The notes under the pieces are model-generated. The model saw nothing but the letters and a program-made list of their open reading frames with translations. It had not been told where the DNA came from and ran no database searches. Below are positions 17,921-41,885 of a stretch of DNA of 64,000 bases, piece by piece. Made by a program: the position numbers and the translations under genes. The first letter of the stretch is position 1. Each line of letters begins with the position of its first letter. Location: the sequence record OM728297.1. One strand, 5' to 3'.

Positions 17921-17955
17921 TATATAGATTAAATATTAAAATAGGAGATGAAAAA

Positions 17956-18438: not shown

Positions 18439-18495
18439 AATGCTGATTTTATAAAAATTATATATATAATACAATGAAAAATGGGGGAATACTAG

Positions 18496-22341: not shown

Positions 22342-22923
22342 ATGGATGAAAATCTTTTAAATAATTTACAAGAGTTAATTGAAAAGCATTCTAAGTCAAA
22401 TGAAATAGAAGTTGTTAAAATGATAATAGATGAATTAATAAGCAGGTATAATTTAGACATGCATTATATAAAAATAAAACAAAAGATATCTCTAGAAGAA
22501 GTAATTAAAAAGCACCCTGAATGGACACAATCAAAAATTGCTGATCATTTAAATATACCCAAATCAACTGTAAGTTATTTAATTCAGAGATACAATTTAA
22601 ATTATAAATCTAAGAAGAGTAATAAAAAAGTAAAAAAGATCAATAATATATCTAAGAGAGATATATTAAATATAATTATGGCTCATCCTGAATGGACACA
22701 ATCAAAAATTGCTGATCATTTAGGAATATCACGAAGTAAACTCAATTCTTTAATAAGTCTATATAATATCAAACAAACTGAGATTAAAAATAATTACTAT
22801 CTATCAATGCTAAGAAAGATAATTAAAGAACATCCTGAATGGACTAAAAGTAGATTATGTATTGAGTTAAATATTAGTCAAACTAAATTAAATAATTTAA
22901 TTAGTAAGCTATCTGACAAATAG
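22342..22923 (+). CDS. Tandem HTH protein (3 HPEWT units)
   Basis: HPEWTQSKIADHL twice plus HPEWTKSRLCIEL. Confidence 0.8.
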   Translation: MDENLLNNLQELIEKHSKSNEIEVVKMIIDELISRYNLDMHYIKIKQKISLEEVIKKHPEWTQSKIADHLNIPKSTVSYLIQRYNLNYKSKKSNKKVKKINNISKRDILNIIMAHPEWTQSKIADHLGISRSKLNSLISLYNIKQTEIKNNYYLSMLRKIIKEHPEWTKSRLCIELNISQTKLNNLISKLSDK

Positions 22924-22948: not shown

Positions 22949-23299
22949 ATGAATAAAAGATATAATAAAAATGAACAGCTTGCAAATGAGTTAAGAGATT
23001 TTATTATTAAAAATGAATTTACAAATGTTCGAATCTACTTTAATAATAAAGCATATGACTGGTACAGTTCTAGTAAAGAACTAATTTTAATTAATAATAT
23101 TAGACCAACAGAATATTTTCCGACTGCAAATAATAAAACTGTTTCAATGAGTTTTGAAGGAAATCTATATTATCCTATGAACTTCGGTGATAATGATAAT
23201 GACTTTACCACCTATAATACAATTAAAAGTATTTTTAAGAGATATGGTTATTATTTTGAATTTGGAGATGCATGGAATCTAACTGCCTACGATTTATAA
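22949..23299 (+). CDS. Hypothetical protein
   Basis: 116-aa ORF with AAGGAG SD. Confidence 0.7.
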   Translation: MNKRYNKNEQLANELRDFIIKNEFTNVRIYFNNKAYDWYSSSKELILINNIRPTEYFPTANNKTVSMSFEGNLYYPMNFGDNDNDFTTYNTIKSIFKRYGYYFEFGDAWNLTAYDL

Positions 23300-23316
23300 A
23301 AGGAGAAAGAATAATA

Positions 23317-24261
23317 ATGGGTAAAAAGATTAATAAAGAAATATTAGAAGAAATAATTAAAGAAAATCCTGATTGGACACAAAGAGAAATAGCTGATCAT
23401 CTAAATTTATCTATATCTTATATTGGGCAGTTAATAAAAAAATATAATATTGATTATAAAGATAAAAATATAAATTACACCATAAAAGAAGAATTAACAA
23501 AAATTATAAATGAACATCCCGATTGGTCGCAAAGAGAAATAGCTGAACACTTAGGGACAGAAAAATCTCATGTGAGTCAATTAATTAAAAAGTATAATAT
23601 TGATTACACTATAAAAAAGAAGAATAAAAAAATAATTATTTCAAAAGAAAAATTAATTGAAATCATTAATGAACACCCTGATTGGACACAAAAACAAATA
23701 GCTGATCATTTAGGAGTTGTAGAATCCTATATCGGTAGGCTAATAAGAAAGTATAATATAATATATGTTAAAAAAGGAAATCAAAGCAGGAATAAATTTA
23801 TGGAAAAAAATTTAATTTCACAATATTTTATGAATGAAGAAATTATGGTAGATTTATTATTTTCAGTAATTAAGAATAATAATGAATTAAATCAAAAAGA
23901 AATAGCTGATCTATTAGTAAAAAGATTAATTAATGAATATAATCTAAATTATAAATTAAAAACTATAACTAAAGATGATTTATTGGATGTAATTAAAGAA
24001 CATCCTGACTGGACACAAAAACAAATAGCTGATCATTTCCTAGCTCTTCCAAATACAATTAATTCTATACTAGTAAGAAATAACATCAATCAAAAAGAAA
24101 TTAGAGAAGAATATATGGTTGAAAAATTAAAAGAATTAATTAAAGAGCATCCTGACTGGACTCAAGCTCAATTAGCTGAACCATTAGGAATTACAAAAAC
24201 ATATGTAAGGAATTTAATTATTAAATATAAATTAGAATATAATAAGAAGAAATTAAAATAA
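23317..24261 (+). CDS. Tandem HTH protein (5 full + 1 degenerate HPDWT units)
   Basis: Repeated (H/N)PDW(T/S)Qx(E/Q)IA(D/E)HL..LI.KYNI.Y; AAGGAG before ATG 23317. Confidence 0.8.
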   Translation: MGKKINKEILEEIIKENPDWTQREIADHLNLSISYIGQLIKKYNIDYKDKNINYTIKEELTKIINEHPDWSQREIAEHLGTEKSHVSQLIKKYNIDYTIKKKNKKIIISKEKLIEIINEHPDWTQKQIADHLGVVESYIGRLIRKYNIIYVKKGNQSRNKFMEKNLISQYFMNEEIMVDLLFSVIKNNNELNQKEIADLLVKRLINEYNLNYKLKTITKDDLLDVIKEHPDWTQKQIADHFLALPNTINSILVRNNINQKEIREEYMVEKLKELIKEHPDWTQAQLAEPLGITKTYVRNLIIKYKLEYNKKKLK

Positions 24262-24271
24262 CTTTAAAGTT

Positions 24272-24279
24272 TATATTAT
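24272..24279 (+). promoter_or_regulatory. Putative early promoter TATATTAT
   Basis: Upstream of the AAA-VWA-paralog operon. Confidence 0.5.
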
Positions 24280-24335
24280 AAAAATGTAATAAACTAGATA
24301 AATAATTGGGAATAGAAATGGAGAGAGAAATTATT

Positions 24336-25535
24336 ATGAAAATGTCAAATTTAATCAAAGCAATCGATATTACAGTTCAATCAGGTTCAGTACCTATGGT
24401 TATGGGTCACAGTGGTATTGGAAAATCAAGTATTGCAAAAATCTATGCAGACTTAATTCAAGAAAGAGAAAATAAAGATGTAGTATATGTTGAGTTATTT
24501 GGTTCTGTTCTTAAAGAAGGTGAATTAACTGGTATGCCAATTAATATCACTAAAAACTATAGCGGAGAAGAATTAAATGTAACAACATATACTATTCATA
24601 CTGCAATTAGAAAACTATGGGAAGCAAATGAGGCAGGTAAAATCCCACTATTATTCTTAGATGAATTAAACCGTTCTGATATTGCAGTACAACAAGAGTT
24701 AATGCAATTAATTCTTACGAAGCAAATTAATGGAAATCCATTACCAGAAAATACTATTATGATTGCGGCAGGAAATCCAGATTCTGAAGATGATGATGGA
24801 ATTGACTATCAAGTAAATACTATGAACTATGCTTTAAGAGATCGTTTTACTGATCTTCATTTAGAAGTAGACTCTGACGAATGGATTAAATGGGCGTTGC
24901 AACAAGTATCATTTTATGATAATGATGACAATCTAATTAAAACAGATTCTATGATCCACAAGAATATTATTGAGTTTATCACAAATGATCCTCTTCAGTT
25001 ACATATCATTAATGCTGAAAATGAAGGTAAAAATCCAACTCCTCGTGCTTGGGAAAGAACTTCTGATGCATATAGATATTTTGAAGAGAATTATGATATG
25101 GAAGACAGTGATAATAAGAGAGCTTTCTGGGGAGTAGTAGAAGGAAACCTTGGGAAAAATACTGCTATTGCATTTAGAAGTTTTATTGAAGAAAATTCTA
25201 AACCAATGATTAATCCTAAGACTATTATTAATAATAAAGATTTATCTAAAGATACAAAGCTAATCGAAAAAATTAAAAATGAAACTATGGCAAGACAAAA
25301 TCTATTAACTCGCTATGTATATATTCATATTGGTAATAATATCGATAAATTTAAAGAAAAAGAGTTAAATAACTTTATTACTTATCTTGATATTATTCCT
25401 GAAGAACTGCTAATGATGGCAATTAGTGAGATTAAGAGAAATCCTAATGATAACATTAGTTCTATTTTTGAAATTTTAAAAACTAATCAAACTTTTATTC
25501 AAAAGTTTGTTAATATCATTCAAAATTTAAAATAA
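24336..25535 (+). CDS. MoxR-type AAA+ ATPase
   Basis: GHSGIGKSS, LFLDELNRS, AAGNP, ALRDRF, TPRAWER. Confidence 0.9.
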   Translation: MKMSNLIKAIDITVQSGSVPMVMGHSGIGKSSIAKIYADLIQERENKDVVYVELFGSVLKEGELTGMPINITKNYSGEELNVTTYTIHTAIRKLWEANEAGKIPLLFLDELNRSDIAVQQELMQLILTKQINGNPLPENTIMIAAGNPDSEDDDGIDYQVNTMNYALRDRFTDLHLEVDSDEWIKWALQQVSFYDNDDNLIKTDSMIHKNIIEFITNDPLQLHIINAENEGKNPTPRAWERTSDAYRYFEENYDMEDSDNKRAFWGVVEGNLGKNTAIAFRSFIEENSKPMINPKTIINNKDLSKDTKLIEKIKNETMARQNLLTRYVYIHIGNNIDKFKEKELNNFITYLDIIPEELLMMAISEIKRNPNDNISSIFEILKTNQTFIQKFVNIIQNLK

Positions 25536-25559
25536 TAGATATAAAAAGGGGAAGTAAAA

Positions 25560-26984
25560 ATGACTATTCTTAATAGTGATAATAAAAATGAAATTTATGA
25601 GTATCTAAAATCAGTATATATTAAAGCAGATGCTCCTTCAGTTCAAGTCTCAGAAAATAATCAAAAGTTAATAGAGAGATATTTCTCTCTATTAACTACT
25701 TCCCTGATCTTAAATGATCGGGATGGAGATAGTAGATTCTATGCTTATTTTTTGTCTTCTGTTAAAAGAACTATTATTCACGATCAGTATTTTGCTCCTG
25801 CCGCAGTATATTATGATGATAATAGAATGACATTTGTGTTATTACTAAATCCATATAAATTATTCTTATTTGAACAAGATGAGATCGTTGCTGTACTAAT
25901 GCATGAATTGCTTCATGTTGCAAATAGCCATATCTATAGACACAAAGTTTTATCTACTAGATATAATAAACTTGACATGCAAAAAGTTAATATTGCAATG
26001 GATTGTGCAATTAATCAGTTTATTAAAAATTTACCTAATGGTGCAATTACACTTAAATCAGTTAAAGAAATGACCGGAGTAAAGAATATTAGATCTAAAG
26101 CAAATTTTGAATATTACTTAGAATTATTATTAAAGAGTAAGAAAGCCAATAAAAATAAGAAATCTGATGGTCAAAGTTCAAAAGATTCAGAAGATCCTAA
26201 TGAATTAAATGATAATGATGTTGATTCTGATGGAAATCTAACCGAAAGTGGTAAAGAAAAAAGATTATCACAATCAAGAAATCATGCTCATGATAAATGG
26301 GATGAAATTGAATCTAGTAAAACAGTAGAGAAAGAGATGTCAGAGAAATTAAAAGATATTCTTCAAGATATTAAAAATAGAAATAGAGGTAATCTTCCTA
26401 ATAATATGGAAGGTATCTTACAATCATTATTAGGTAAACAAGAAATCGCATGGCAAAAAATATTTAAAAATATGATCGGTGGATTAAAGGTTCCATTTAA
26501 AAGAACTCCCATGCGTAGAAGTAGAAGACAACCTGATAGACCTGATGTACTGGGAAGGATCTCGGACAGAGAATGTAAAGTTGCAGTTGCTTTGGATATG
26601 TCAGGATCAATGACAAATGAAGAATTAGCATGGTCACTTAATGAAGTAATTGGTTTATTAAAAGGGAAGAAATCAACTGTTACTATCATTCATTTTGATT
26701 CAGAGGTTGGAACTGTTTATGATGTTAGAAAAAAGAATGATATTAAATTTAAAAGAGACAAAAATGGCGGTACAGAATTTTCACCTGTTATTAGCTATGT
26801 AAATAAAAATTTACCAAAAACAGATGTACTAGTAGTCTTTACTGATGGCTTTGGTGAATATGAATTATTAGAAAAACCAAATTGTCAAATGTTATGGATT
26901 ATTACAAGAGGAAATGAATTGTCCGTTCGAAAACCATATGGTAAAGTAAGACGTAATAATTATAAGGAGGAAAGAGATGAATAA
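25560..26984 (+). CDS. DUF2201-type metallopeptidase-like (HExxH) + VWA domain protein
   Basis: VLMHELLH..NIAMDCAINQ; MIDAS DMSGS, FDSEV, GGTEF, VFTDG. Confidence 0.88.
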   Translation: MTILNSDNKNEIYEYLKSVYIKADAPSVQVSENNQKLIERYFSLLTTSLILNDRDGDSRFYAYFLSSVKRTIIHDQYFAPAAVYYDDNRMTFVLLLNPYKLFLFEQDEIVAVLMHELLHVANSHIYRHKVLSTRYNKLDMQKVNIAMDCAINQFIKNLPNGAITLKSVKEMTGVKNIRSKANFEYYLELLLKSKKANKNKKSDGQSSKDSEDPNELNDNDVDSDGNLTESGKEKRLSQSRNHAHDKWDEIESSKTVEKEMSEKLKDILQDIKNRNRGNLPNNMEGILQSLLGKQEIAWQKIFKNMIGGLKVPFKRTPMRRSRRQPDRPDVLGRISDRECKVAVALDMSGSMTNEELAWSLNEVIGLLKGKKSTVTIIHFDSEVGTVYDVRKKNDIKFKRDKNGGTEFSPVISYVNKNLPKTDVLVVFTDGFGEYELLEKPNCQMLWIITRGNELSVRKPYGKVRRNNYKEERDE

Positions 26985-27657
26985 TTGGTTACATACTAGA
27001 ACGATAAGTGATGATGATACTATCATCACTTATCCTTTCATTTGTATTAGTGATCCTTATAGTGGTTTCGGTAATTCTAGAGAGCTTGAAAATATGTTTG
27101 ACCTTTTCAGAGAATTTTTAAAGAGAAAAGGATATGCACTTAAATTTGATAAAGGATATAGTAAAGAATCAATTTCTAAATATTTTGAATTCCGATTAGA
27201 AGACTTTAAAGAAAGATTACCTAAAATTATTGATAGTCTTAAAGGAAGATATTTAATTTTTGAGGAGTTTGGATATTATAGAGAAAACAAGGGGAATTTT
27301 CGTTTAGCATATCTTCTATCAGAATATAAAAATATACATAAAGATTTTTTCAATATTTTAATTCCCACTACCATTTCCCTTAGAAATGATTCAGATATTA
27401 ATAAATTTATTAATAATTTTTTAAGTAAATTTAAGGAATCATTATTTAAGGCTATTCTATATATGATTGAATATTTTGAAAGTAATAATCTGTTGAATTA
27501 CTTAGAATCAATAGAGAAATACATTCTGATTAACGGTTTAAGACAATATGTTGATTATGATAAATATGCATATTTATATGAAAATGATCCTAAATTTAAA
27601 AATAGTCTAGAAAGAGTAAGAAAATATGAAGCAATGAATTCATTAGAATCATTATAA
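26977..27657 (+). CDS. Paralog family A member 1 (short form)
   Basis: C-terminal KFKESLFKAILYMIEYF..YENDPKFKNSLERVRKYEAMNSLESL. Confidence 0.85.
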   Translation: MNNWLHTRTISDDDTIITYPFICISDPYSGFGNSRELENMFDLFREFLKRKGYALKFDKGYSKESISKYFEFRLEDFKERLPKIIDSLKGRYLIFEEFGYYRENKGNFRLAYLLSEYKNIHKDFFNILIPTTISLRNDSDINKFINNFLSKFKESLFKAILYMIEYFESNNLLNYLESIEKYILINGLRQYVDYDKYAYLYENDPKFKNSLERVRKYEAMNSLESL

Positions 27658-27667
27658 GGAGGATAAA

Positions 27668-28366
27668 ATGAGTAAAGAAATAAAAATTAATTGGATGGAT
27701 GAAAAGATATTAAAAACAAATACAAATATTATTGATTTTCCTTTTGTTAAAAATTTTGATATTTACCACGGACATTTAGCTGTTAGATCACTTTATTCTG
27801 AATATTGTAATATAATAACTCTAATTGATCAAGATAATTATAAAAAAATAGAAATTGGTGATTCTTATCAAAGACTTAATGACATCTATTCAGAAGAAGA
27901 ACTACTAGAAGGATACTTTGAAAGTTTATTAGAAACATTTAAAAGAAAATTTCCTAAATTCATTGAAGAATTAGAAGGTGGTTTTGATTCATATAGAGAT
28001 TATGGAAACTTTAGATTGAGTTATTTATTGACTGAATACAGTGATGATTGTAAAAATACATTTAATAGTTTAACTTATTGTTATGCTTTTACTAGGGAGG
28101 TTACTATTTATTACTCTACTGATCTATTTAAAGAGAATTTTAGAAAATTAATGTTTAAAGCAATTCTATATATGATTGAGTATTTAGAAAATAATAAGTT
28201 ATTTACATATCTCGAATCAGTAGAAAGATATTTTCTGTTAGAAAATTTAAGAACTTATATTAACTATGAAGAAAATTGGTATTTATACGAAAATGATCCT
28301 AAGTTTAAAAATAGTCTAGAAAGAGTAAGAAAATATGAAGCTATGAATATATTAAATGAATTATAG
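27668..28366 (+). CDS. Paralog family A member 2 (short form)
   Basis: FKAILYMIEYL..YENDPKFKNSLERVRKYEAMNILNEL. Confidence 0.85.
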   Translation: MSKEIKINWMDEKILKTNTNIIDFPFVKNFDIYHGHLAVRSLYSEYCNIITLIDQDNYKKIEIGDSYQRLNDIYSEEELLEGYFESLLETFKRKFPKFIEELEGGFDSYRDYGNFRLSYLLTEYSDDCKNTFNSLTYCYAFTREVTIYYSTDLFKENFRKLMFKAILYMIEYLENNKLFTYLESVERYFLLENLRTYINYEENWYLYENDPKFKNSLERVRKYEAMNILNEL

Positions 28367-28377
28367 GAGGTAATTTT

Positions 28378-29523
28378 TTGATAAAGGATTTTGAAGAATA
28401 CTATCAGGAATTATATAGAAATGTACATTTAATTTTAAGAAATAATAAATATTATATAGATAGTAATAAAACTCAATTTGATCAAAAGTGTATTGATGTG
28501 TTTAATAGTTTAAATGAAGCAAAATATTTGTTTCAAGAAAATAACAGGAATTATATTGATTATAAATTCTTTAAAAGATTGTTAATAGATGGATATATGG
28601 AAAATAATAAAACAAAAGAATTCTTTTTATTATGCGTAATCATATTAAATAAGATTGATAATTTGCTACCTGTAACTCAATCAGTAATCCTTCCAAAGAT
28701 GTTAACAATATTAGAGAAGCTTGATGAAGAATATGGAAGCGATATCTATATATTTATAATGACAAAATTAAAAGAAACATTTATTAAAATTTCAAGTAAT
28801 ATTATCAATAAAGATTTTATCTATAAACAAATTCAAGATTATCCAATGTCTGCTAAATTTATTTATAGTAAACCTGTTGAATTGGAGTTAGATTTGGATC
28901 TAGAGAGACCCGATATTGATTTGATGACATTTAAACATAATAGAAGCAATATATTTTTACCAACAAGCAATATATTCAAAATGTTAGAAATGGATTATAT
29001 TCTTTATTGTAATGACTTAGAATTAAATAATAAAGATAAGATGGATTATTATTTTGAAATACTATATAATGATTATTTAAAGAGAAGGAATTTATTTCCT
29101 TTTGATAAGATAACGTTCAAAAATCCTAAGTATTATAAAAAATTAATGCCCACAACAGGTCTATATGATGGATGGAGTTTTATTCGTTTATTTGATAATA
29201 TCGGAATAGAAGACCAAATTCATTCATATTTCTTTAATGCGGTATTAAATATAGTAAAACCTACTACTATACCTAAAAATTATGATTATTTTTCTTTTAA
29301 GTATAAAGAATTATTCAATAAAATAATATTATTTAATTTGAGTTTATATAAAGAACAGGATAAAAAATGTAATGTATTTAAAATTGAAAAATATCTTTCC
29401 AATGAGTATTTCAGTAATTTTATATGGTATGATATTTTTAGTGAATATTATGAGAGAGATCATATGGATAGTGTAAAAAGAATAAGGGAATATAGAGCAA
29501 CATCTTTACTTGATTCTTTATAA
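28378..29523 (+). CDS. Paralog family A member 3
   Basis: RPDIDL, NKDKMDYYFEIL, YFSFKYKELF, SVKRIREYRATSLLDSL. Confidence 0.85.
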   Translation: MIKDFEEYYQELYRNVHLILRNNKYYIDSNKTQFDQKCIDVFNSLNEAKYLFQENNRNYIDYKFFKRLLIDGYMENNKTKEFFLLCVIILNKIDNLLPVTQSVILPKMLTILEKLDEEYGSDIYIFIMTKLKETFIKISSNIINKDFIYKQIQDYPMSAKFIYSKPVELELDLDLERPDIDLMTFKHNRSNIFLPTSNIFKMLEMDYILYCNDLELNNKDKMDYYFEILYNDYLKRRNLFPFDKITFKNPKYYKKLMPTTGLYDGWSFIRLFDNIGIEDQIHSYFFNAVLNIVKPTTIPKNYDYFSFKYKELFNKIILFNLSLYKEQDKKCNVFKIEKYLSNEYFSNFIWYDIFSEYYERDHMDSVKRIREYRATSLLDSL

Positions 29524-29539
29524 TAAGGAGAAAGCTAAT

Positions 29540-30769
29540 ATGATTGATAAATTAAATAAACTTGGATTTAAGTTAGATATAGACAATGAAGCTTTATTAA
29601 TAGAAGATGATTTTGTACAAAATCATCTTCCATCACATATTTATGATGTATATAAAGAGTTAGATAAAGGCTATCGCTACCAACCAAATAAAGTTATAGA
29701 TTATATTAATAGACGTATGTTTTGTTTAAGAGACGATCAATTAATCTATAATTGGGAATTTCATGAGAAGCTTTGTGCTTTTCCTAGAGGATCAAGTTGG
29801 ATTACTGAAAGATATGAACCAAGAATTACTATAATTAGTTTAATAATATTAAATAAATTAATTGAAAATAATATAAAATTTAAGATAGAGTTTCCTAAAT
29901 CCCTTAGACAAACTGATACAGGTAAAATTATACATGAGTGTTATTATAAGCTTTGCAATATTAATACTATAAAAGTAATGAAATCAAGCATAGACTATAA
30001 ACTTATTTTTAAACAAGATCTCGCACCAATATATCGTAAAGTATTAGTATATTTATTTAATAATAAAGAGAATAGAGATTACTTTTATAATTACTATGAT
30101 GTTCAGATCCCATCTAGAGATAATTCAGTATATATCAGTTTTTCTAAAAATGATTTATTATTCGGATTTAATAGACCTGATATTGATATTTTAAATATTA
30201 AATTCTTAATGCAAGACTCACTTGTTGATGGTGGAATTACTCTTGATCTTAAAACTGATTATGACATATTTTATGATGATGAGGAGTTAAATAATAAAGA
30301 AAAAATTAATTCTTATTTTCAAGAATTATATGATGATTTTAAAATAAGAATGAAATCTAATTTTTATACGGCTTACAATCCATTGGGTTATGATGATTCT
30401 TTTTTGTATAAATATACTTTTAATGTCGATAATAGTTCATTACGTTTATTATTAAATAAAGAAGACTATAGAAATTTTTTACTAAGTTTCAAGTTCATTA
30501 ATCGACATGAAAAGTCTTTAGGGAATATTTCATATTTTGATTATAAATTTAAAGAAACTATATGTCGTATAATAATTTATACTATGGAATATCAAAGGGA
30601 AAATAAAAATACAATATTATTAAATAGGATTGAAAAATTCTTAGCAAATGATGCATTTGAGAAGTATTTACACTTTAAACACTTTAAAGAAAAATTAGGT
30701 TGGCAGAATGAAGAAAGTGAAAGAAGAATAATAGAATATAATGCAATTGATAAATTAGAATCATTGTAG
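29540..30769 (+). CDS. Paralog family A member 4 (ATG 29540)
   Basis: RPDIDIL, NKEKINSYFQEL, YFDYKFKETI, SERRIIEYNAIDKLESL. Confidence 0.85.
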   Translation: MIDKLNKLGFKLDIDNEALLIEDDFVQNHLPSHIYDVYKELDKGYRYQPNKVIDYINRRMFCLRDDQLIYNWEFHEKLCAFPRGSSWITERYEPRITIISLIILNKLIENNIKFKIEFPKSLRQTDTGKIIHECYYKLCNINTIKVMKSSIDYKLIFKQDLAPIYRKVLVYLFNNKENRDYFYNYYDVQIPSRDNSVYISFSKNDLLFGFNRPDIDILNIKFLMQDSLVDGGITLDLKTDYDIFYDDEELNNKEKINSYFQELYDDFKIRMKSNFYTAYNPLGYDDSFLYKYTFNVDNSSLRLLLNKEDYRNFLLSFKFINRHEKSLGNISYFDYKFKETICRIIIYTMEYQRENKNTILLNRIEKFLANDAFEKYLHFKHFKEKLGWQNEESERRIIEYNAIDKLESL

Positions 30770-30781
30770 GAGGTTATTATA

Positions 30782-31933
30782 TTGAGTGTTATTGAATCTT
30801 TAAAAGAATTATTATTAGATGTTGATGAAGATAATAATATAATTATAATGGAAGATAATGACTTAGTTAGCAATGAATGTACAGTTAGTATGTTAAATGA
30901 TATAAATAAAGAAAGAAAATTTCTTTTTGTAGAAAATGATACTGTATACTTTGATGCATCATTCATAATATTTAATGTTTGGTCTTATAAGAAAAATCAA
31001 GCAATTAATAGTTATTTTCATTTTAATCATACTGAATTTGCTAATTATGTTGTTAGTAGTATTATTAAAAAATTAATAGACAGCGATCACATAACTTTAG
31101 ATATCATTTCAGATAAATTAGATCAAATGACCTTATTAAAATCAGGATTAAGAGTATATCCAGATGATGAAGACTATTCAATGTTAAAAACTATTAATAG
31201 TGTTGGATATGAGTTAGCAAGTTATATTTACGATCATGAATTTATTAAGAGATCTCTTGATAAGTCACCTATAGATGATGGTTATAGATCAGCTGATCAA
31301 TCAGTATTTAGTAAACCCACAATACATGAATCTAAATTAAATTTAACTAGACCGGATTTAGATATTCTCTATTTTCCTTTAATTAAGGATTTTAAGACAA
31401 ACTCAGCATCTATAACTTTAATGCAAGATTATAGGTTATTATTTAATGATCCAAAATTAGAAAAAGAAGAATTAATTAATGAATACTTTAAAGATATTCT
31501 AGAAGACACTAAAAAGAGATTAACGGTTGTTAAAGAACAAAGGGTATATAAGCATGAATTAAATTCATTTTATATTCATTTAATTCAATTAGTTAGAGGT
31601 AAAGTTACTAAAACTAGAAAAAATAAAATAAATAAACAATTATCAACTTCTAGAGCAAGATTCTTTGGGAAAAAAGAGAATTATTTTGAGGGAAAATTTA
31701 GGGAAACAATTTTTAAAATAGTACTCTTTATGATTGAATATTTTGAAAAAGAAAATTTAGAGAAAAAATTAGAATCAATTGAAAAAGCATTTTCTTTAAA
31801 AATATTTAAGAATTATATTGGTTATTATGAATATGATGATATTCGAATAAGTTATTTGAATGATGATAAATTTGCTAAAAGCAGAGAAAGAATATCTAGA
31901 TATGAAGCAGAAGAACTCTTAGAACAACTTTAA
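30782..31933 (+). CDS. Paralog family A member 5
   Basis: RPDLDILYFP, KEELINEYFKDI, YFEGKFRETIFK, SRERISRYEAEELLEQL. Confidence 0.85.
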   Translation: MSVIESLKELLLDVDEDNNIIIMEDNDLVSNECTVSMLNDINKERKFLFVENDTVYFDASFIIFNVWSYKKNQAINSYFHFNHTEFANYVVSSIIKKLIDSDHITLDIISDKLDQMTLLKSGLRVYPDDEDYSMLKTINSVGYELASYIYDHEFIKRSLDKSPIDDGYRSADQSVFSKPTIHESKLNLTRPDLDILYFPLIKDFKTNSASITLMQDYRLLFNDPKLEKEELINEYFKDILEDTKKRLTVVKEQRVYKHELNSFYIHLIQLVRGKVTKTRKNKINKQLSTSRARFFGKKENYFEGKFRETIFKIVLFMIEYFEKENLEKKLESIEKAFSLKIFKNYIGYYEYDDIRISYLNDDKFAKSRERISRYEAEELLEQL

Positions 31934-31934
31934 T

Positions 31935-31970
31935 TTAGAATGATATCCTTTTTATAGGATATCATTCTAA
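31935..31970. terminator. Bidirectional terminator
   Basis: 15-bp stem ttagaatgatatcct/aggatatcattctaa between convergent genes. Confidence 0.8.
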
Positions 31971-31977
31971 TAATTTT

Positions 31978-32424
31978 TTATACTGCGTCTTCATCAATAA
32001 CTACTTCTCTGTCAGTCTTAGTTACTTTTTGTAATATCCAAGTAGGAAAAGTAAGTTCATGAATACCAGTGAAAGTTTGTCTATGATGTTTTAAACATAA
32101 TACAATTAAATTTCTAATATCATCTACAGTTGTAATAGGTACTTCATTTAATTTTTTTCCATATCCGTAAATATCAAACAACTCTACGAGTTCTTTTAAT
32201 TTATCATAGTCACAGACATTTTGCATAGACCAACTACATAGGAAATGATGAACTTCTAAATGTTCAGTGTTTTCACATATCCAACACTTATAATGACCAT
32301 CTTCTTTTAATCTTTTTTTAGATTTTCTAAACGTAGATGATTCTTTTCTTTCTTCATGTTCAGGAATTAAAACACTTTCTTTTAATGTAGTTCTATCAAT
32401 ATGTTCTGCGATTATTTTACTCAT
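31978..32424 (-). CDS. HNH-like Zn-binding protein, inverted within family A array
   Basis: CWIC..LEVHH..NLIVLCLKHH..GIH pattern (HNH/beta-beta-alpha-Me like). Confidence 0.6.
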   Translation of the reverse strand: MSKIIAEHIDRTTLKESVLIPEHEERKESSTFRKSKKRLKEDGHYKCWICENTEHLEVHHFLCSWSMQNVCDYDKLKELVELFDIYGYGKKLNEVPITTVDDIRNLIVLCLKHHRQTFTGIHELTFPTWILQKVTKTDREVVIDEDAV

Positions 32425-32444
32425 ATTACCACCCCTTCTAGCTA

Positions 32445-32456
32445 TATTATTATGTT
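32445..32456 (-). promoter_or_regulatory. Putative late promoter AACA-N6-TA
   Basis: AACAtaataaTA upstream of the SD of the HNH-like gene. Confidence 0.6.
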
Positions 32457-32468
32457 TAAAAAAATTTA

Positions 32469-32492
32469 AAAATATATATTATACTTTTGATA
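32469..32492 (+). promoter_or_regulatory. Putative strong early promoter (24-bp copy also at 60872-60895)
   Basis: aaaatatatattatacttttgata, identical at two operon starts. Confidence 0.65.
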
Positions 32493-32529
32493 CTAAATAA
32501 TTTGAGAAATAATATTAGGAGGACTATTT

Positions 32530-33867
32530 ATGACAGATACTCAAAAACTAATTGAATTGGGTTTTGATTTTGATTCACATGGAGTATTTATTTTTAATGA
32601 TTCTTATTTATTTAAAGAACACATATATTCAAGAAATGAGGAAATTGGCAAGCTTTTTCGTGATTATTATAGTACTTCTGAAACGATAAATCCATTTGAC
32701 TTTTTACATGAACTCAACCAAAAACATAAGTTTTTATATCTGCATGGAAATAAAATAGTTTATAAATTATCATTTTATGGTTTAGATTGCATGCCTATTC
32801 AAAGCCCTAGTTTCCTAGAAATTGAACTTAAAATTCATCATGATTTATATAATGCTGTATTAAGAGATTCAAATACAGATGATATTTATAAGTCTAAATC
32901 ATCTTCTCTTTGGTATGCAGGTGCAAGAATACAGAATGACAGTATTTTTAGAGGGAATAGATATCTTGCTACCACTGTATTAACAGAGGTATTGAATATA
33001 TTCATGGAGAACAATATTGAGATTTGTTTAAAAATGGATATAACTCATAATCAATTAGTTTATCCTGATATGATTAGGAGAGAATTTACTCATAATTCTA
33101 GGCTACCAAATGGTCGTATAAATCCAGTTAAGAAACTATTAAAAAATATGTATACTTTAGATTTTATTAAAAGATACTATAATAATTATGAAAGTCTACC
33201 ATCATTAAATGATGAAGAGTATAAAGATTCTTTTTCAGCCTATCATAAATGGAGAAAACATGAAATTTATTTATATCCTAGAATGAATCGTCCTGATATT
33301 GATCTCCTGACATTTTCATTAATAGACGCAACAAAAGTTTCAACTAACTCAAATTCACTTTTTAGTGACTTTCTTCTAATTACTAACGAGCTAACTAATG
33401 AAAATATTGATTCTTATTTTAATGAATTGATTAATGATGCCAAAATTAGATTTTATAAATTATTTTCAATTAAAAATACAATTGCTGCAGATATAACTAA
33501 TTTTTGTTTATTTGAGATGGTATTAGTAAATTGTGATAAATATATTACAGATTTTATTATTGATAACACTCCTGTTGGACAAAAAGAACCAATTACAAAA
33601 CTTACTGGGATTGAAGAATATTTTAATAAGAAACTTAGGGAATCATTATTTAAGATATTATTTCATATGATCAATACACTCTATTCTAATAATGAAATTG
33701 AATATGCTAATAGATTAGAAAATTATCTATCTTATGATTCATATAAAAATTTATTTTTATTTGATGAATCTAAAGAGGTCAAAGATATAATTAATAGTAA
33801 TGGGTTTTCCAGAAGTATGAAGAAAATTAAAGAATATGAGGCAATTAATATAATGGAATCATTATAA
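32530..33867 (+). CDS. Paralog family A member 6
   Basis: RPDIDLL, NENIDSYFNEL, YFNKKLRESLFK, SMKKIKEYEAINIMESL. Confidence 0.85.
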   Translation: MTDTQKLIELGFDFDSHGVFIFNDSYLFKEHIYSRNEEIGKLFRDYYSTSETINPFDFLHELNQKHKFLYLHGNKIVYKLSFYGLDCMPIQSPSFLEIELKIHHDLYNAVLRDSNTDDIYKSKSSSLWYAGARIQNDSIFRGNRYLATTVLTEVLNIFMENNIEICLKMDITHNQLVYPDMIRREFTHNSRLPNGRINPVKKLLKNMYTLDFIKRYYNNYESLPSLNDEEYKDSFSAYHKWRKHEIYLYPRMNRPDIDLLTFSLIDATKVSTNSNSLFSDFLLITNELTNENIDSYFNELINDAKIRFYKLFSIKNTIAADITNFCLFEMVLVNCDKYITDFIIDNTPVGQKEPITKLTGIEEYFNKKLRESLFKILFHMINTLYSNNEIEYANRLENYLSYDSYKNLFLFDESKEVKDIINSNGFSRSMKKIKEYEAINIMESL

Positions 33868-33883
33868 ATATGGAGGATAAGAA

Positions 33884-35113
33884 ATGGATATAAAAAAAGA
33901 ATTAGAAAAATTAGGAATTGTATTAAAAAAGGATGAAACTTCTTCAAAAAATAGTTATAATTTATATATGACTAAGGATGCAGAAGAAAAACTTATCCCA
34001 TATCATGAAAGACTTATCATAGAGAGATTAAATACTCCTTTTACCCTTTATCAAACTGATTCAGGACAACATATATTTAAACTGCACTTATTTAAGTTAA
34101 TTGATAATAAAATAATAATAGATATTGAAAAATTATCTATACAAACAGAATATTCTAACTTGGAATATATGGAGATTCTTATATTTCTCTCTGTAACAGA
34201 AAAATTATTAGACTATAATTTTCCTTTGTCATTTGGAAATAATTTATTTCGTAATTATGTCTTAAACTCATATTGTATGAGTGAGAATCTAATTGAAGAA
34301 AATTTAAATAATATCATTAAGTATCAAAGTAATGATTTACTTAATGATAATGATGACGCAACACTAGAATACTATATTGACATGCGTGTATCTATAATTA
34401 GATCTAAAGTTGTTAGAAGATGTTATAACCTAGATTATTGTACTAAAAATAGATTTATTTCAAATCCAGTTTATAGATATTTTAATGATATAAATAATGA
34501 AAAAATAAATTTATATCGTCCTGATTTAAATCTTTTTTATGTTCCATTCGCTAATGTTAATTTTGGAAATTCTCATATTTCAGGGTTATTATTAGATTAC
34601 ATCATTTTAAATAATGATCAAAAATTTGAAGCTAAAGATAAGATTGATAAGTATTTTGATGAGTTAGTAGATGATTTTAAAAAAAGATTAGAATCAGATC
34701 CATCAAAATTATTTGAGAATTTGTCAACTCGTAGTCGTGGTCCATACTATAATATAACATTTAGTCTTACTTATGAGGCTAATTTTATTAAGACAAAATT
34801 AAATCACTCTCCTGTTAACCAACATCCTTTAAATAAAAAAAGAAATAAAAAAGGTGTTTATGGTATTGATTACTTTGATAGTAAACTGAGGGAATCTTTA
34901 TTTAAAGTTATTACAATTTTAATAAAACATTTTGAAACTTTAAATCAAAGCTCATTCTTAGAGAAAATGGAAAAGACATTAGCTACTAATGAAATACAAA
35001 ATTATATTGGTTATAATGTTTATCCAGAATTATATCTTAATAATCCACAATTCAAAAATAGTTTAAAAAGAGTTAGACAATATGAAGCATTAAGAATATT
35101 AGATACTATTTGA
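33884..35113 (+). CDS. Paralog family A member 7
   Basis: RPDLNLFYVP, KDKIDKYFDEL, HPL, YFDSKLRESLFK, NNPQFKNSLKRVRQYEALRILDTI. Confidence 0.85.
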   Translation: MDIKKELEKLGIVLKKDETSSKNSYNLYMTKDAEEKLIPYHERLIIERLNTPFTLYQTDSGQHIFKLHLFKLIDNKIIIDIEKLSIQTEYSNLEYMEILIFLSVTEKLLDYNFPLSFGNNLFRNYVLNSYCMSENLIEENLNNIIKYQSNDLLNDNDDATLEYYIDMRVSIIRSKVVRRCYNLDYCTKNRFISNPVYRYFNDINNEKINLYRPDLNLFYVPFANVNFGNSHISGLLLDYIILNNDQKFEAKDKIDKYFDELVDDFKKRLESDPSKLFENLSTRSRGPYYNITFSLTYEANFIKTKLNHSPVNQHPLNKKRNKKGVYGIDYFDSKLRESLFKVITILIKHFETLNQSSFLEKMEKTLATNEIQNYIGYNVYPELYLNNPQFKNSLKRVRQYEALRILDTI

Positions 35114-35123
35114 GGAGATAAAT

Positions 35124-36356
35124 ATGATTAAAATTGAAGAAAGATTAAAACAGTATAAAATTAATATTAGAAATAATCAACTTTATTTGAGTGAAGATAG
35201 TGCTAAATATATTTTAGATAGAAAATTATTAGATTATTATAATTATATATTAAATGAATCTAGTAAAAGGGAATATTTATTTAAATTTAGTCTTACTGCC
35301 CGTGGAATAAGAATTGATAATGATAATAAAATAATTGTTGAACCTAATCTTATAGTATATCAAAAACACTGGGGATGGACAAATCCACCTGAAATTAATA
35401 CAATAATTAAAGTACTAATTATAAGTGAATTAGTAAATAAGTTAATGGATGAAGGTTATAAAGTATTTTTAGGTAATAATACATCAAAGGAAAGAAATCT
35501 TGAATTATTTAGGTGGATGCAAAGTCAATATAATAAAATGCACAAATTATCTGGTATTGATAATTCTTTAAATGCTAGAGAAGTATTTAAAGACATATCT
35601 GAGTATTTACATATTTCAACTAGAATGCTAAGTGATAGAATTCTCAGGAATAGTTATACTAAGGAATATGTAATTAATGCGAGACCCGCTAAGGCTTTTA
35701 GACCGCCATATACATTATTCAATATCTGCTTTCATGATTTGGAGCTAGATTCTAAATTGAATAGATTAGATCTTGACTTATACTATATACCTTTTATTAA
35801 AGATATTATTAATAATCAATTTGGTATTGCATTAATGAAAGACTATGTTCTTTTAAATAATGATAGAGAGCTTGAAAATTTTGATAAGATAGATAAATAT
35901 TTTGATGAACTATTACAAGATGCAGAAACAAGATTACCGATAATATCTAATATTGAAATTAAAACTAAATCTACAGCAAGTGTATATTTTCAGCTAATTG
36001 ATATTAAAGATATAAGACAAGTTACAATTATTAAAAGAATAAAATCAAAATATAAAGTAACTTCTAGGAACAAACATCCATTATCAAAATATAAAACCTT
36101 AGAAGGTTCTCAATATTTTAGTGCAAAATTGAGAGAATCACAATTTAAAGCGCTATTATTAATGATAGAATATTTTGAAAAACATTGCAATCAAAATGAT
36201 TTAGCTAGAGCAGAAAAAATATTATCACTTAAAGAAGTCCAGAATTATCTTGGCTATGAACACTATAAGCATTTATATGAAAATAATCCAAAATTTAAAG
36301 ATAGTTTTAAGAGAGTAAAAGATTTAGAAGCTATTGAATTATTAGAGAATCTATAA
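35124..36356 (+). CDS. Paralog family A member 8
   Basis: RLDLDLYYIP, DKIDKYFDEL, HPL, YFSAKLRESQFK, YENNPKFKDSFKRVKDLEAIELLENL. Confidence 0.85.
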   Translation: MIKIEERLKQYKINIRNNQLYLSEDSAKYILDRKLLDYYNYILNESSKREYLFKFSLTARGIRIDNDNKIIVEPNLIVYQKHWGWTNPPEINTIIKVLIISELVNKLMDEGYKVFLGNNTSKERNLELFRWMQSQYNKMHKLSGIDNSLNAREVFKDISEYLHISTRMLSDRILRNSYTKEYVINARPAKAFRPPYTLFNICFHDLELDSKLNRLDLDLYYIPFIKDIINNQFGIALMKDYVLLNNDRELENFDKIDKYFDELLQDAETRLPIISNIEIKTKSTASVYFQLIDIKDIRQVTIIKRIKSKYKVTSRNKHPLSKYKTLEGSQYFSAKLRESQFKALLLMIEYFEKHCNQNDLARAEKILSLKEVQNYLGYEHYKHLYENNPKFKDSFKRVKDLEAIELLENL

Positions 36357-36370
36357 TTGGGGGATTTTAA

Positions 36371-37516
36371 ATGTCTGAATTTAATTTAATGGAAAATGTG
36401 ATTGAAGTAATAGAGGTTCCAAGTGGTAGTAAATCTGGTTTATTCCCAAGAAAGAGAGAATCTGGTTTTGATAAAATATTAAGGCAAGAAATTGTACCAG
36501 CTCAAAAGAATCATCTTGATACAATTATAAAACGAATGAAAGCAATAGGCTATGATAAAATTGCTGTACTTAACACAAATATTCAATTTTATTGGGAGAT
36601 AACTACAGTCGAATATCCTTTTAATAATGATAATCAGCTACATATAACATTAGTTAATAAAGAAAATACTATTGAATATTTAAGTTTAGTAAATCTTAAA
36701 TCTGGTTTTTTCTCAGATAGAAAATTTAATAACCTAACAAAGAGACTCCAAGATTCAGAAGAAGATATTGGAAAGATTATGAGAGCATATATAGAATATA
36801 ATTTACCATATTACTTTTCAAGAAATTATGAGAAATATGAAAAGGAGAATGAAGAAATGAAAAAAGAAAATAATGAAGTTAGTAATAAAATTAATAATAA
36901 AGAGGTAAATATCCTACTAGCTCCGTTAGTAAAGGATTTCTTAGGAACAATTGGTAGTATTGCAATATTAAGAAATTTTAGTGAGTATTATGAAGACAAG
37001 TATATTGAGGATAAAGATAAAGTTGATAAATATTTTAATGAATTAATTGATGATGTAAAAACGTTATTAAAAACTAAAAATGATATCACATTAATTGATC
37101 CTAATCCAAAAAATAATAAGTATATTAATCTTGTTAAAATTATGAAAGGAGAAGAATTAGTATTTAAGAATATTAAAAGAAGCCTATCAATTAATAGAAA
37201 TAGTAAACATCCTTTATTAAGAAGTGAGCTTGAACCACTCCATTCAGAGTATTTTGAAGGAAAATACAGAGAGTATATTTTTAGAACAATGCTTGTGTTA
37301 ATTGAATTCTTTGAGAATAGTTTCAAGGAAAATCCAATGGCAACTAAACATTCTGAATTTCTTAACAATATTGAAAAAGCTTTATCTAAAGACGAAATAA
37401 AAGAATATGTTGGTTATGATTTGTTTAAATCTGATTATGAGAATAATCCTATCTTTGAAGAAAGCTTAAAGCGTGTTAAAGGACATTCAGCTGTTGATAT
37501 ATTAGAATCCCTATAA
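36371..37516 (+). CDS. Paralog family A member 9
   Basis: KDKVDKYFNEL, HPL, YFEGKYREYIF, YENNPIFEESLKRVKGHSAVDILESL. Confidence 0.85.
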   Translation: MSEFNLMENVIEVIEVPSGSKSGLFPRKRESGFDKILRQEIVPAQKNHLDTIIKRMKAIGYDKIAVLNTNIQFYWEITTVEYPFNNDNQLHITLVNKENTIEYLSLVNLKSGFFSDRKFNNLTKRLQDSEEDIGKIMRAYIEYNLPYYFSRNYEKYEKENEEMKKENNEVSNKINNKEVNILLAPLVKDFLGTIGSIAILRNFSEYYEDKYIEDKDKVDKYFNELIDDVKTLLKTKNDITLIDPNPKNNKYINLVKIMKGEELVFKNIKRSLSINRNSKHPLLRSELEPLHSEYFEGKYREYIFRTMLVLIEFFENSFKENPMATKHSEFLNNIEKALSKDEIKEYVGYDLFKSDYENNPIFEESLKRVKGHSAVDILESL

Positions 37517-40001: not shown

Positions 40002-40039
40002 ATATAAGTAGTAGGAAATTAATTTCCTACTACTTATAT
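40002..40039. terminator. 38-bp perfect palindrome (probable terminator)
   Basis: atataagtagtaggaaatt|aatttcctactacttatat. Confidence 0.6.
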
Positions 40040-40080
40040 TAATAATAATAAAAACTAAAATTTTTTATAAGGTGATTATT

Positions 40081-40986
40081 ATGCTAATGACAAAATCTTT
40101 TAAAAATATACACCTAATTAAATGGGATATCTACGCAGTTCTTAAAACACATGATAAAATATTAGATATACTATCGAATAGAGTAAATTATCAGAAAGTA
40201 TACATTGAAACAATTTATACTGAATCTGGAATCCAAGTAGTACAAAAATTAACTAATGATACATACAATATATCTAAAAATAGTCTCCCTCTTTTATCTT
40301 ATGGAGAAGCCAAGTTTAGTAAAGATGCAATGGATATGATAGTAAATAATTTTATGAATAGTTATAATTTAAAAACTCAAGATGAATATAATGAATATAA
40401 AGAAATGCTCTTAAATAATGGGAATAATGAAGTTACAGTTGTTATAAATACATCTAATATTGTATTACAGACAAATCACATTTCTGATGAAGAAATAGAT
40501 CGTGCTAAAAAACATCTAATTTCTAATCATGATTTTTATGAATCTAAAAAATTGTGTGATGTGTGTGGTAAAAGATCTAATAATATATCTGATAAAAATA
40601 GATTCGGTATAGGTAAAAGTTATTATTATTGTGATGATCATAGAGTTAAAGAATTATATAGGAATAAAAGTATAATAAATAACCAGATTTTATCATATAA
40701 TGGAAAAAATAAAATTAATCTTGGAGCTAAACCTACTTGTGATGTATGTAAAGGAAGTTTATTCACCTCTATATACACTGATCAATTTTATTTATTATAT
40801 GATGACACAAAAGTATGTAATAATTGCGTCATTCATGGCTATATAGAAAAAAATTTATTAAATCAACATGGACATAGATGTGAAAACTGTCGTGGACAAG
40901 GATATATTAGGGATTACAAACTCTATAAAGTAGATTGTGCTTATTGTCAAGGAACAGGTTGGATTAAGAAGGAGAATAGTAAATGA
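40081..40986 (+). CDS. Paralog family B (HLIxW) member 1 with C-terminal DnaJ-type Zn fingers
   Basis: HLIKWD; DEYNEYKEMLLNN; CENCRGQG..CAYCQGTG. Confidence 0.75.
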   Translation: MLMTKSFKNIHLIKWDIYAVLKTHDKILDILSNRVNYQKVYIETIYTESGIQVVQKLTNDTYNISKNSLPLLSYGEAKFSKDAMDMIVNNFMNSYNLKTQDEYNEYKEMLLNNGNNEVTVVINTSNIVLQTNHISDEEIDRAKKHLISNHDFYESKKLCDVCGKRSNNISDKNRFGIGKSYYYCDDHRVKELYRNKSIINNQILSYNGKNKINLGAKPTCDVCKGSLFTSIYTDQFYLLYDDTKVCNNCVIHGYIEKNLLNQHGHRCENCRGQGYIRDYKLYKVDCAYCQGTGWIKKENSK

Positions 40987-41885
40987 GGGATCTACATTTA
41001 ATTAAATGGTCATTAGCAGGAATGATTAGATTTGAAGATTCATGTCTTCCTCAATTTGATAAAACTTATGAAATTATTTTTACTGATGGTTATGTAGAAT
41101 TAGTTTATAAACGAAAAAATAATTTTATTACATTTAAAGTACCTGTTGGAATTAAATATGGGAAACCTTATCTTTCTAATGAATTAAAAAAAGAAATACA
41201 AGAAAGAACTATTACTTATTATTATAAATATGTTAATTGTCTAAAAAGAGATGAATATTTAGATTATATGAATAAATATCTACAAAATAAAAATAATAAA
41301 GTAGCTATTTTAAGAGATTCTAAAAAGTTAAAAGTATATGCTAATTATGAAATATCTGAGAAAGAGTTTCTAAATATTAGAAGGGAAAGAGTGAAAATTA
41401 AGGATTTTCTTGAAGAGAATATATGCGAAGTCTGTGGTTCAAGAAACTCATTAACTAGATTCAATAGACACAATTTATGCACTAAACACTCAATACAAGT
41501 TGAATTTAAAGAATATCATAGTTTAGAAGATTTAATTAAGGAAAATAATAAATTAAAATGCCATTGCTGTAATGAAGATATTTTAAAAACTGATCTTTAT
41601 ATGAAACAAGATAAAGAAGCGAAAGAAAATATCGCATCGCCAATATTCACAATATTTCATAATACGGATCCACTGGATAAAGATTTATATTATTGTGATC
41701 AATGTAAAAGAAAGTTTAATGATAAAATAGTTGAAAATATTGTTAAACGGTCAGAAATATGTAAATGTAAGGAGTGTAATGGAAAAGGTTATACACGAAA
41801 TTATTATGTAGAAAAAGAATTCTGTGAAAAATGCAATGGCAAAGGATGGGTTAAGAAGAAGGGAGTAAATAATGAAGTACAATAA
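40983..41885 (+). CDS. Paralog family B member 2 with C-terminal DnaJ-type Zn fingers
   Basis: HLIKWS; YEIIFTDGYVEL; DEYLDY..NKVAI; CKECNGKG..CEKCNGKG. Confidence 0.75.
   Translation: MRDLHLIKWSLAGMIRFEDSCLPQFDKTYEIIFTDGYVELVYKRKNNFITFKVPVGIKYGKPYLSNELKKEIQERTITYYYKYVNCLKRDEYLDYMNKYLQNKNNKVAILRDSKKLKVYANYEISEKEFLNIRRERVKIKDFLEENICEVCGSRNSLTRFNRHNLCTKHSIQVEFKEYHSLEDLIKENNKLKCHCCNEDILKTDLYMKQDKEAKENIASPIFTIFHNTDPLDKDLYYCDQCKRKFNDKIVENIVKRSEICKCKECNGKGYTRNYYVEKEFCEKCNGKGWVKKKGVNNEVQ

Follow-up and report, generated by a model that had tools for sequence, protein, structure and literature searches.

In a 64,000-nucleotide stretch of sequence record OM728297.1 (the window), positions 24,336 to 37,516 encode a MoxR-class AAA+ ATPase, a protein that joins a zincin-like metallopeptidase to a VWA domain (zVWA), and nine paralogous proteins, designated P1 to P9 (Table 1). 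The window is part of the Bacillus jumbo phage vB_BsuM-Goe21 (OM728297; Goe21), of the AR9/PBS1 group, whose sequence matches the 13.2-kb region at 100% identity and with unchanged coordinates. AR9, PBS1 and Internexus match this region at ~97% identity across 70-72% of its length. All four are uracil-DNA jumbo phages of the genus Takahashivirus with their own multisubunit RNA polymerases. We find that the nine paralogs constitute an orphan family without a recognised enzyme fold. Their sequences indicate soluble cytoplasmic proteins composed of a variable head and a constant part, which probably act on the host and perhaps do so via the MoxR-VWA pair. In the literature searched, we found no earlier description of the paralog family, of its restriction to the neighbourhood of the pair in Bacillales jumbo phages, of the differential loss of its members in PBS1-group isolates or of the fusion of one head to a domain of the SPO1 gp41 type; the jumbo-phage MoxR/peptidase-vWA pair itself had already been described (PMC7824862).

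All eleven open reading frames (ORFs) of the block, i.e. MoxR, VWA and the nine paralogs, were confirmed at the coordinates first assigned to them. The proposed homology of the nine genes of 226-445 aa held up as well: the proteins could be aligned to each other (24-43% identity to P1) and carried the C-terminal motifs that the preliminary description had quoted. When run on the 64-kb window, a hidden Markov model (HMM) of the family recovered exactly nine paralogs with E values from 1e-58 to 1e-108, the next match having an E value of 0.0065. The paralogs have no hydrophobic segment and a pI near neutral. Their constant part begins with a short non-helical motif (consensus P-x-h-D-h-h-x-h-P), followed by four or five long helices that are separated by a variable loop, and the C-terminal ending [LMI]-x-x-[LI] is present in 15 of 15 known family members. 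The P-x-h-D-h-h motif is degenerate in P1, P2, P9 and some members from the Bacillus pumilus phage BpSp. Two other sequence features withstood examination in part. Among the glutamates reported as conserved, that of the IEK motif is nearly invariant, but BpSp members do not retain that of YEA. The RPDxDL motif ascribed to the long paralogs is exact in P3-P7, whereas P8 has RLDLDL and P9 is without it. For P4, the start is most likely ATG 29540 rather than TTG 29510, because an AAGGAG site precedes this ATG and Internexus gene 209 begins at the equivalent codon.

The N-terminal regions had been described as dissimilar. This is correct for P9, whereas P4, P6 and probably P5 have heads with detectable homology to the other heads, and the heads of P3, P7 and P8 are marginal in this respect. 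By sequence comparison, the heads appear to be mostly diverged homologues of one another, only the P9 head being clearly foreign, and the modular design originally proposed is partly right. Residues 3-140 of P9 matched positions 1-140 of the 140-position Pfam model PF25749 (SPO1_gp41) with 257.9 bits (cut-off 27). This head is 37-40% identical to gp41 of phage SPO1 and relatives (38% to SPO1 gp41), with E values of ~1e-19 to 1e-22 by tblastn and 1.6e-24 by phmmer, and is a bona fide separate SPO1_gp41 domain fused to the constant module of the family. SPO1 gene 41 is an early gene and part of the host-takeover module, and its product expressed alone reduces the growth of B. subtilis by at least 50% (PMC6873191). 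The P9 head spans the full-length domain, and P9 and gene 41 are each early genes in a large phage that infects B. subtilis. In contrast to the fused P9 head, however, SPO1 gp41 is a free-standing 154-aa protein encoded in the terminal redundancy. The other heads were compared with the SPO1 host-takeover proteins gp36-gp60 as candidate homologues; only P9 matched, and only gp41. The heads are thus probably host-directed modules carried on a common C-terminal piece, with the identity between P9 and gp41 as the best evidence.

It had been stated that the paralogs belong to no known family. This holds for P1-P8, which have no Pfam, NCBIfam or PDB match, but not for the head of P9. A Pfam scan to an E value of 1 returned only noise for P1-P8 and nothing for the C-terminal part of P9. 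The NCBIfam scan of the paralogs gave zero matches, and a sequence-profile search of the PDB gave nothing credible, the sole match being SarA at E 0.2. Matches to PHROG were confined to groups of unknown function. A similarity of P9 to Tox-PLDMTX (E 0.078; 13.5 bits, cut-off 26.1) was below threshold and was treated as noise. The AlphaFold2 (AF2) model of P7 (pLDDT 70.6, pTM 0.69) shows, with moderate confidence, an alpha/beta head of ~117 residues followed by helices; the conserved P-x-h-D-h-h motif sits in a low-confidence, non-helical linker joining head and constant module. The P1 core was modeled as all-alpha (pTM 0.80). Foldseek searches of the PDB with the P7 and P1-core models gave best E values of 0.16 and 1.1, respectively, to generic helical repeats, and matches in BFVD were limited to members of the family itself (AR9, PBS1, BpSp).

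The sequence RPD[IL]D[IL] is similar to the hDhDh strand of minimal nucleotidyltransferases. The paralogs could accordingly be divergent nucleotidyltransferase-like enzymes with RPDxDL as the DxD catalytic strand, and P1 gave a weak PADLOC match to AbiEii (E 1e-4). However, this match was obtained with 1 of 14 members and involved the C-terminal helical part only, at the non-catalytic end of AbiEii. There was no Pfam nucleotidyltransferase match to an E value of 1, and the G[GS] motif is absent upstream. The first Asp is missing in most BpSp members and both are missing in P1, P2 and P9. The AF2 models show coil at the motif and no nucleotidyltransferase alpha/beta core, and Foldseek found no enzyme fold. 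We dropped membership in the AbiEii/nucleotidyltransferase group because 1 of 14 members matched and the Asp residues are not conserved; an enzymatic role of this kind is extremely unlikely.

We next consider how the family has evolved among these phages. The paralogs are 20-43% identical to one another, and the family tree has a star-like shape, its terminal branches being ~2 substitutions per site long and P1 and P2 forming the sole strongly supported pair (99/100). The copies are therefore old, and the expansion by gene accordion that had been suggested is not supported, at least as a recent event: what varies among the 97%-identical phages results from deletions. AR9 keeps five copies and a remnant and is without P2-P4, Internexus is without P1-P3, and PBS1 without most of P1, P3 and P4. 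An in-frame deletion within P6, spanning window positions 32605-33751, is common to AR9, PBS1 and Internexus and leaves a 56-aa ORF (25 N-terminal and 31 C-terminal residues). A short direct repeat or conserved 3' ends mark the deletion junctions, and AR9 g030 combines the body of P1 with a P2-type C-terminus. AR9, PBS1 and Internexus can do without P1-P4 and P6, which would be expected of accessory genes that act on the host. The orthologues retained among the four phages have ratios of non-synonymous to synonymous substitution rates (dN/dS) of 0.12-0.35, and the retained paralogs are thus functional genes under purifying selection. No sign of positive selection was seen in orthologue dN/dS at the depth of this phage set.

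The remnant of P6 in AR9 is g033 (AR9 8113-8283), which matches window positions 32530-32604 joined to 33772-33867 and keeps the conserved end of the C-terminal helix. Its transcript exceeds all others of the block in abundance, with 161, 1364 and 474 reads per kilobase per million (RPKM) at 5, 20 and 40 min, respectively. The 56-aa ORF is annotated in PBS1 (gene 220) and unannotated in Internexus, which has the same deletion. Internexus also contains, in place of P1-P3, a 65-aa ORF (5665-5862) that starts P2-like (MNKEIKIN) and continues with sequence absent from Goe21. This ORF may derive from an additional paralog that has not been sampled or from a rearrangement.

The two proteins encoded ahead of the paralogs proved to be as first described. 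The MoxR call was supported by a match to Pfam AAA_5 of 30.3 bits (cut-off 22), a match to phrog_1297 (ATPase) at E 4e-77, and canonical Walker A (GHSGIGKS, aa 24-31) and Walker B (LLFLDE, aa 105-110) motifs identified by direct reading. No Pfam AAA_3 match was found for this protein, nor a PDB relative by sequence search. Homologues elsewhere in phages are labelled MoxR/COG0714 by the depositors of the records. The Goe21 protein is 100% identical to AR9 g028; among Goe21, AR9, PBS1 and Internexus, 0-1 non-synonymous differences compare with 10-14 synonymous ones (dN ~0). The constraint on MoxR is far stronger than that on its zVWA partner (dN/dS 0.08-0.13 in the Goe21-group phages) or on neighbouring genes. 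The zVWA gene begins 24 nt 3' of the MoxR gene, and the two are paired equally in BpSp and in the Listeria phage LPJP1.

The presence of an HExxH motif and of a VWA domain with an intact DxSxS metal ion-dependent adhesion site (MIDAS) in zVWA was likewise confirmed. The N-terminal metallopeptidase region matched DUF2201_N with 58.5 bits (cut-off 23.2) and the C-terminal region DUF2201/VWA with 60.7 bits (cut-off 26.4). In an alignment with five diverged phage homologues, the HExxHxxxxH residues (H115, E116, H119 and H124) and the complete MIDAS (D346, S348, S350, T405 and D429) are invariant, suggesting that the MoxR-zVWA machine is probably active. A sequence search of the PDB revealed no relative of zVWA. 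Note that zVWA is commonly mislabelled 'HNH endonuclease', both in phrog_1314 and in many RefSeq phage records, including those of AR9 and PBS1. AAA_5/MoxR-class AAA+ proteins act with a VWA partner in RavA-ViaA, CbbQ-CbbO, NorQ-NorD and Rea1, with an acidic client residue bound at the MIDAS. Goe21 too pairs an AAA+ protein of this class with an intact-MIDAS VWA protein. In contrast to the Goe21 protein, which carries a zincin, those systems have no peptidase domain and each serve a single dedicated client (Rubisco, NOR etc.).

We then examined how the block is transcribed. It had been proposed to open at a motif at position 24272. This motif, TATATTAT, falls within sequence that is identical to the early promoter mapped by experiment for AR9 g028, with its primary transcription start site (TSS) P028 (PMC5312081 table), and the AR9 record annotates an 'early promoter' there. 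The sequence of a second promoter, ahead of P6, is identical to that of the mapped AR9 TSS P033 (PMC5312081). In AR9, early primary TSSs were mapped upstream of g028 and g033, and transcripts of g028-g036 are detectable at 5 min and reach their maximum at 20 min; early promoters are transcribed by the injected virion RNA polymerase and require no new protein synthesis (PMC5312081). Since the sequences upstream of 24286 and 32489 match mapped AR9 early TSSs, the block consists of two early transcription units, MoxR-zVWA-P1..P5 and P6..P9. The single co-directional run of the preliminary description is correct in that all eleven genes are on the plus strand, but it is broken between P5 and P6 by a terminator, an HNH nuclease gene and the second early promoter. 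The minus-strand HNH gene, for which Pfam support is weak (HNH_2, E 0.058), interrupts the paralog array and is not part of the MoxR-VWA/paralog system. Together with the adjoining terminator, it separates P5 from P6 in all four phages, and it might favour local recombination. A sigma-70 promoter scan of the block gave matches no more frequent than chance, as expected because the phage relies on its own RNA polymerases.

Table 1. Genes and transcription signals of the MoxR-zVWA-paralog block (window coordinates).
Feature	Position	Strand	Basis	Remarks
Early (virion-RNA polymerase) promoter 1	24267..24286	+	Motif TATATTAT at 24272-24279	TSS = G 24286
MoxR-class AAA+ ATPase, 399 aa	24336..25535	+	Pfam AAA_5, phrog_1297, Walker motifs	AR9 g028 orthologue
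Zincin-like metallopeptidase fused to VWA (zVWA), 474 aa	25560..26984	+	Pfam DUF2201_N, DUF2201	AR9 g029 orthologue
P1, 226 aa	26977..27657	+	Family alignment and HMM	Constant module only
P2, 232 aa	27668..28366	+	Family alignment and HMM	Constant module only; absent from AR9 and Internexus
P3, 381 aa	28378..29523	+	Family alignment and HMM	Lost or fragmented in AR9, PBS1 and Internexus
P4, 419 aa from TTG 29510	29510..30769	+	Family alignment and HMM	409 aa if ATG 29540
P5, 383 aa	30782..31933	+	Family alignment and HMM	AR9 g031 orthologue; dN/dS 0.12-0.17
Hairpin terminator, end of transcription unit 1	31935..31970	+	15-bp stem, then T-run	
Free-standing HNH nuclease gene between P5 and P6	31978..32424	-	ORF	Annotated HNH nuclease in AR9, PBS1 and Internexus
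Early promoter 2	32470..32489	+	Motif TATATTAT at 32475-32482	TSS = G 32489
P6, 445 aa	32530..33867	+	Family alignment and HMM	Full length in Goe21 only
P7, 409 aa	33884..35113	+	Family alignment and HMM; AF2 model	AR9 g034 orthologue
P8, 410 aa	35124..36356	+	Family alignment and HMM	AR9 g035 orthologue; dN/dS 0.19-0.29
P9, 381 aa	36371..37516	+	Pfam PF25749	AR9 g036 orthologue; SPO1_gp41 head and constant module

The distribution of the family was determined by an exhaustive search of 1.84 billion (1.84e9) representative proteins with the family profile. This gave 13 matches, three from BpSp and the rest from AR9-like phages. A word-based search with the family returned AR9-group proteins only, and no 7-mer is conserved across the family. 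BpSp has five members (gp079 and gp088-091) flanking MoxR gp083 and zVWA gp084. Once the BpSp sequences had joined the family HMM, a single 396-aa member was detected in LPJP1, directly downstream of MoxR and zVWA (full length, E 4e-7). In the LPJP1 record (7682-10509), MoxR and zVWA are each in 2-3 frameshifted pieces, which were searched separately and not joined, and the downstream member is intact; the frameshifts are either sequencing errors or pseudogenes. The association with the pair observed in the window was thus upheld: the family lies beside MoxR/zVWA in all three lineages that have it (AR9-like, BpSp and LPJP1), and is not found mostly unlinked from the pair, the known members occurring only beside MoxR/zVWA.

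What might the paralogs do next to such a pair? The bacterial MoxR-vWA-VMAP ternary conflict systems include a third protein whose C-terminal domain is conserved and whose helical middle part and N-terminal domains vary; the published proposal is that the vWA protein binds a peptide from its partner and that the complex is remodelled by MoxR, and peptidase domains are often attached (Kaur et al. 2020; PMC7159879). Because of this precedent, we favour a reading in which the paralogs may well be the third components of a phage-encoded 'ternary' MoxR-vWA machine, a proposal that by analogy seems quite plausible, if short of probable. The paralog heads would bind different host proteins, and the constant part would be captured by the MIDAS of the VWA domain or by the AAA+ ring. 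ATP-driven remodelling and/or the zincin domain would then inactivate or cut the bound protein. P1, P2 and the AR9 g033 mini-protein have the constant part but lack a head; they might act as regulators or as competitors. The contacts of the paralogs with MoxR/VWA, the host targets and the proteolysis are all features that we infer. In support of this reading, the family adjoins the pair in every lineage that has it, P1-P5 of Goe21 share a transcription unit with the pair, and the AR9 block is transcribed early. Somewhat less likely is a version in which the MoxR ring and zincin-VWA are served by an interchangeable library of adaptors, the heads of which would seize distinct host proteins (e.g. 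the target of gp41) while the C-terminal part plugs into the MIDAS or the AAA+ ring for inactivation.

The parallel with the VMAP systems is architectural only. Both have a MoxR and vWA core, a third gene nearby, and variable N-termini on a constant C-terminus. However, VMAP systems are found in multicellular bacteria, whereas the Goe21 block belongs to a phage and would be used early and against the host; in Goe21, the vWA protein carries an N-terminal zincin as its peptidase. In addition, 5-9 tandem paralogs accompany a single MoxR-vWA pair in systems of the Goe21 type, unlike in VMAP systems. VMAP-C is an alpha+beta domain with ~7 strands and 6-7 helices, in contrast to the constant module of Goe21, for which an all-alpha fold is predicted and Pfam gives no match. 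Membership of the paralogs in the VMAP family was ruled out on these latter grounds.

Several observations weigh against a joint function of the paralogs and the pair. There are 239-399 phage records with a zVWA protein and 81 with a MoxR relative, and the family is missing from nearly all of them; two more distant loci on viral or metagenome contigs (MoxR 36% identity) likewise contain the pair and no family member. Neither a family member nor a conserved third gene was found in the corresponding neighbourhoods of Staphylococcus jumbo, Vibrio, Alteromonas and rV5-like phages. (A MoxR-seeded scan of bacterial genomes found nothing.) MoxR identity to Goe21 is 61% and 42% in the other family-bearing lineages and then falls to ~25%, and the family is confined to the clade in which MoxR is at least 42% identical to that of Goe21. 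The linkage may also be weak evidence of function, with adjacency inherited, because the three family-bearing lineages are mutual closest relatives with a common synteny (gyrB ... HTH genes ... MoxR ... zVWA; HTH, helix-turn-helix). In BpSp, three unrelated genes lie between zVWA and the array and one member is upstream, and in Goe21, P6-P9 are under their own promoter. The BpSp members do not conserve the acidic residues that had been suggested as MIDAS ligands, and the start-stop overlap of P1 and zVWA is not retained in PBS1. The gp41 domain acts without the pair in SPO1-like phages, as these generally have no MoxR-VWA pair: 10 records of Bacillus phages match zVWA, of which 8 are from Takahashivirus. 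Finally, tandem paralog arrays are a general habit of the early regions of these phages.

Taken together, the wide occurrence of the pair without the family, the confinement of the family to one syntenic clade, the separate promoter of P6-P9, the other paralog arrays of the same early regions and the autonomy of the gp41 domain in SPO1 are consistent with an independent early host-takeover family that acts on host targets by itself. Its constant module would then serve oligomerisation, stability or localisation, and its adjacency to the pair would be inherited gene order. We regard this as the main rival, only slightly less likely than the ternary reading. Against it, adjacency to the pair is kept down to 42% MoxR identity, even with the single copy of LPJP1, while the paralogs diverge to ~20% identity. 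Moreover, the start of P1 (26977) overlaps the stop of the VWA gene (26984) by 8 nt, as had been noted, and this start-stop overlap is present in both Goe21 and AR9, suggesting coupling.

The relationship might also be reversed, with the paralogs as clients that are folded or assembled by MoxR-VWA, or that are cut by the zincin at the P-x-h-D-h-h linker to release active heads. The location of this conserved motif in a low-confidence, non-helical linker would fit cleavage, as would the intact peptidase motif and the activity of gp41 as a free-standing 154-aa protein. Yet P1 and P2 are headless and nevertheless under purifying selection, and it is in these two, in P9 and in some BpSp members that the linker motif is degenerate. 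A client role is therefore unlikely.

A role of the pair in virion assembly was proposed by Iyer et al. 2021 for jumbo-phage MoxR/peptidase-vWA proteins (PMC7824862). The MoxR-vWA-peptidase would then be a morphogenetic chaperone, for which the ATV tail is a precedent, and the paralogs would be assembly factors or minor virion proteins. This agrees poorly with the early promoters and the presence of transcripts at 5 min in AR9, as well as with the loss of four or five copies without loss of viability and the identity of one head as a host-takeover domain. Furthermore, BpSp gp079, gp083, gp084 and gp088-091 are absent from the 23 virion proteins identified in a proteome of limited depth. We consider an assembly role very unlikely.

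Other repetitive gene groups were observed in the vicinity. Just 5' of the MoxR promoter, at 22342-22923 and 23272-24261, the window encodes two paralogous proteins with 3-5 tandem HTH units each, built on the repeat HP[ED]WTQ..IA.HL...S.V..LI..YN and with numerous Pfam HTH matches. The 193-aa HTH gene has no full-length orthologue at 90% identity or above in AR9, PBS1 or Internexus. BpSp likewise has two HTH genes directly 5' of MoxR. Two more three-member tandem paralog groups occupy window positions 40015-42315 and 52737-54854, the former corresponding to AR9 genes annotated as 'Zn finger protein of DnaJ family'. In BpSp, a six-member tandem array (14000-19310; 245-308 aa, 28-43% mutual identity) is located 3' of the block; it is unrelated to the paralog family and had no BLASTP match among the ORFs of the window. 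The G+C content of the window is ~22-30% throughout. GC and AT skew are negative over positions 6001-12000, which suggests a block of minus-strand genes within an otherwise plus-strand early region.

Poxvirus ankyrin/PRANC (F-box-like) host-range families combine variable target-binding heads with a constant C-terminal dock to the SCF ligase. Among phage proteins, SPO1 Gp53 is a ClpC adaptor-like protein (PMC6873191). As an analogy only, the Goe21 paralogs resemble these in having variable heads, a constant C-terminal part that could dock to a degradative machine, and a copy number that varies among relatives. In contrast, the poxvirus proteins and Gp53 hijack a host machine (SCF and ClpCP, respectively), whereas the candidate machine in Goe21 is phage-encoded, and there is no relation in sequence or fold.

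In conclusion, zincin-fused MoxR-VWA pairs occur in hundreds of large phages, none with a known client. If the ternary reading is true, the paralogs would be the first candidate partners of such pairs, and in a genetically tractable host, B. subtilis 168. It would give a function to a nine-member orphan family and a mechanism to the SPO1 host-takeover protein gp41. Phages would then use the ternary MoxR-vWA logic predicted for bacterial immunity, providing a viral counterpart both of the VMAP systems and of the poxvirus ANK/F-box families. Even if the paralogs are an independent host-takeover family, the subsets of copies in Goe21, AR9, PBS1 and Internexus represent a natural deletion series for studies of host range and host takeover.

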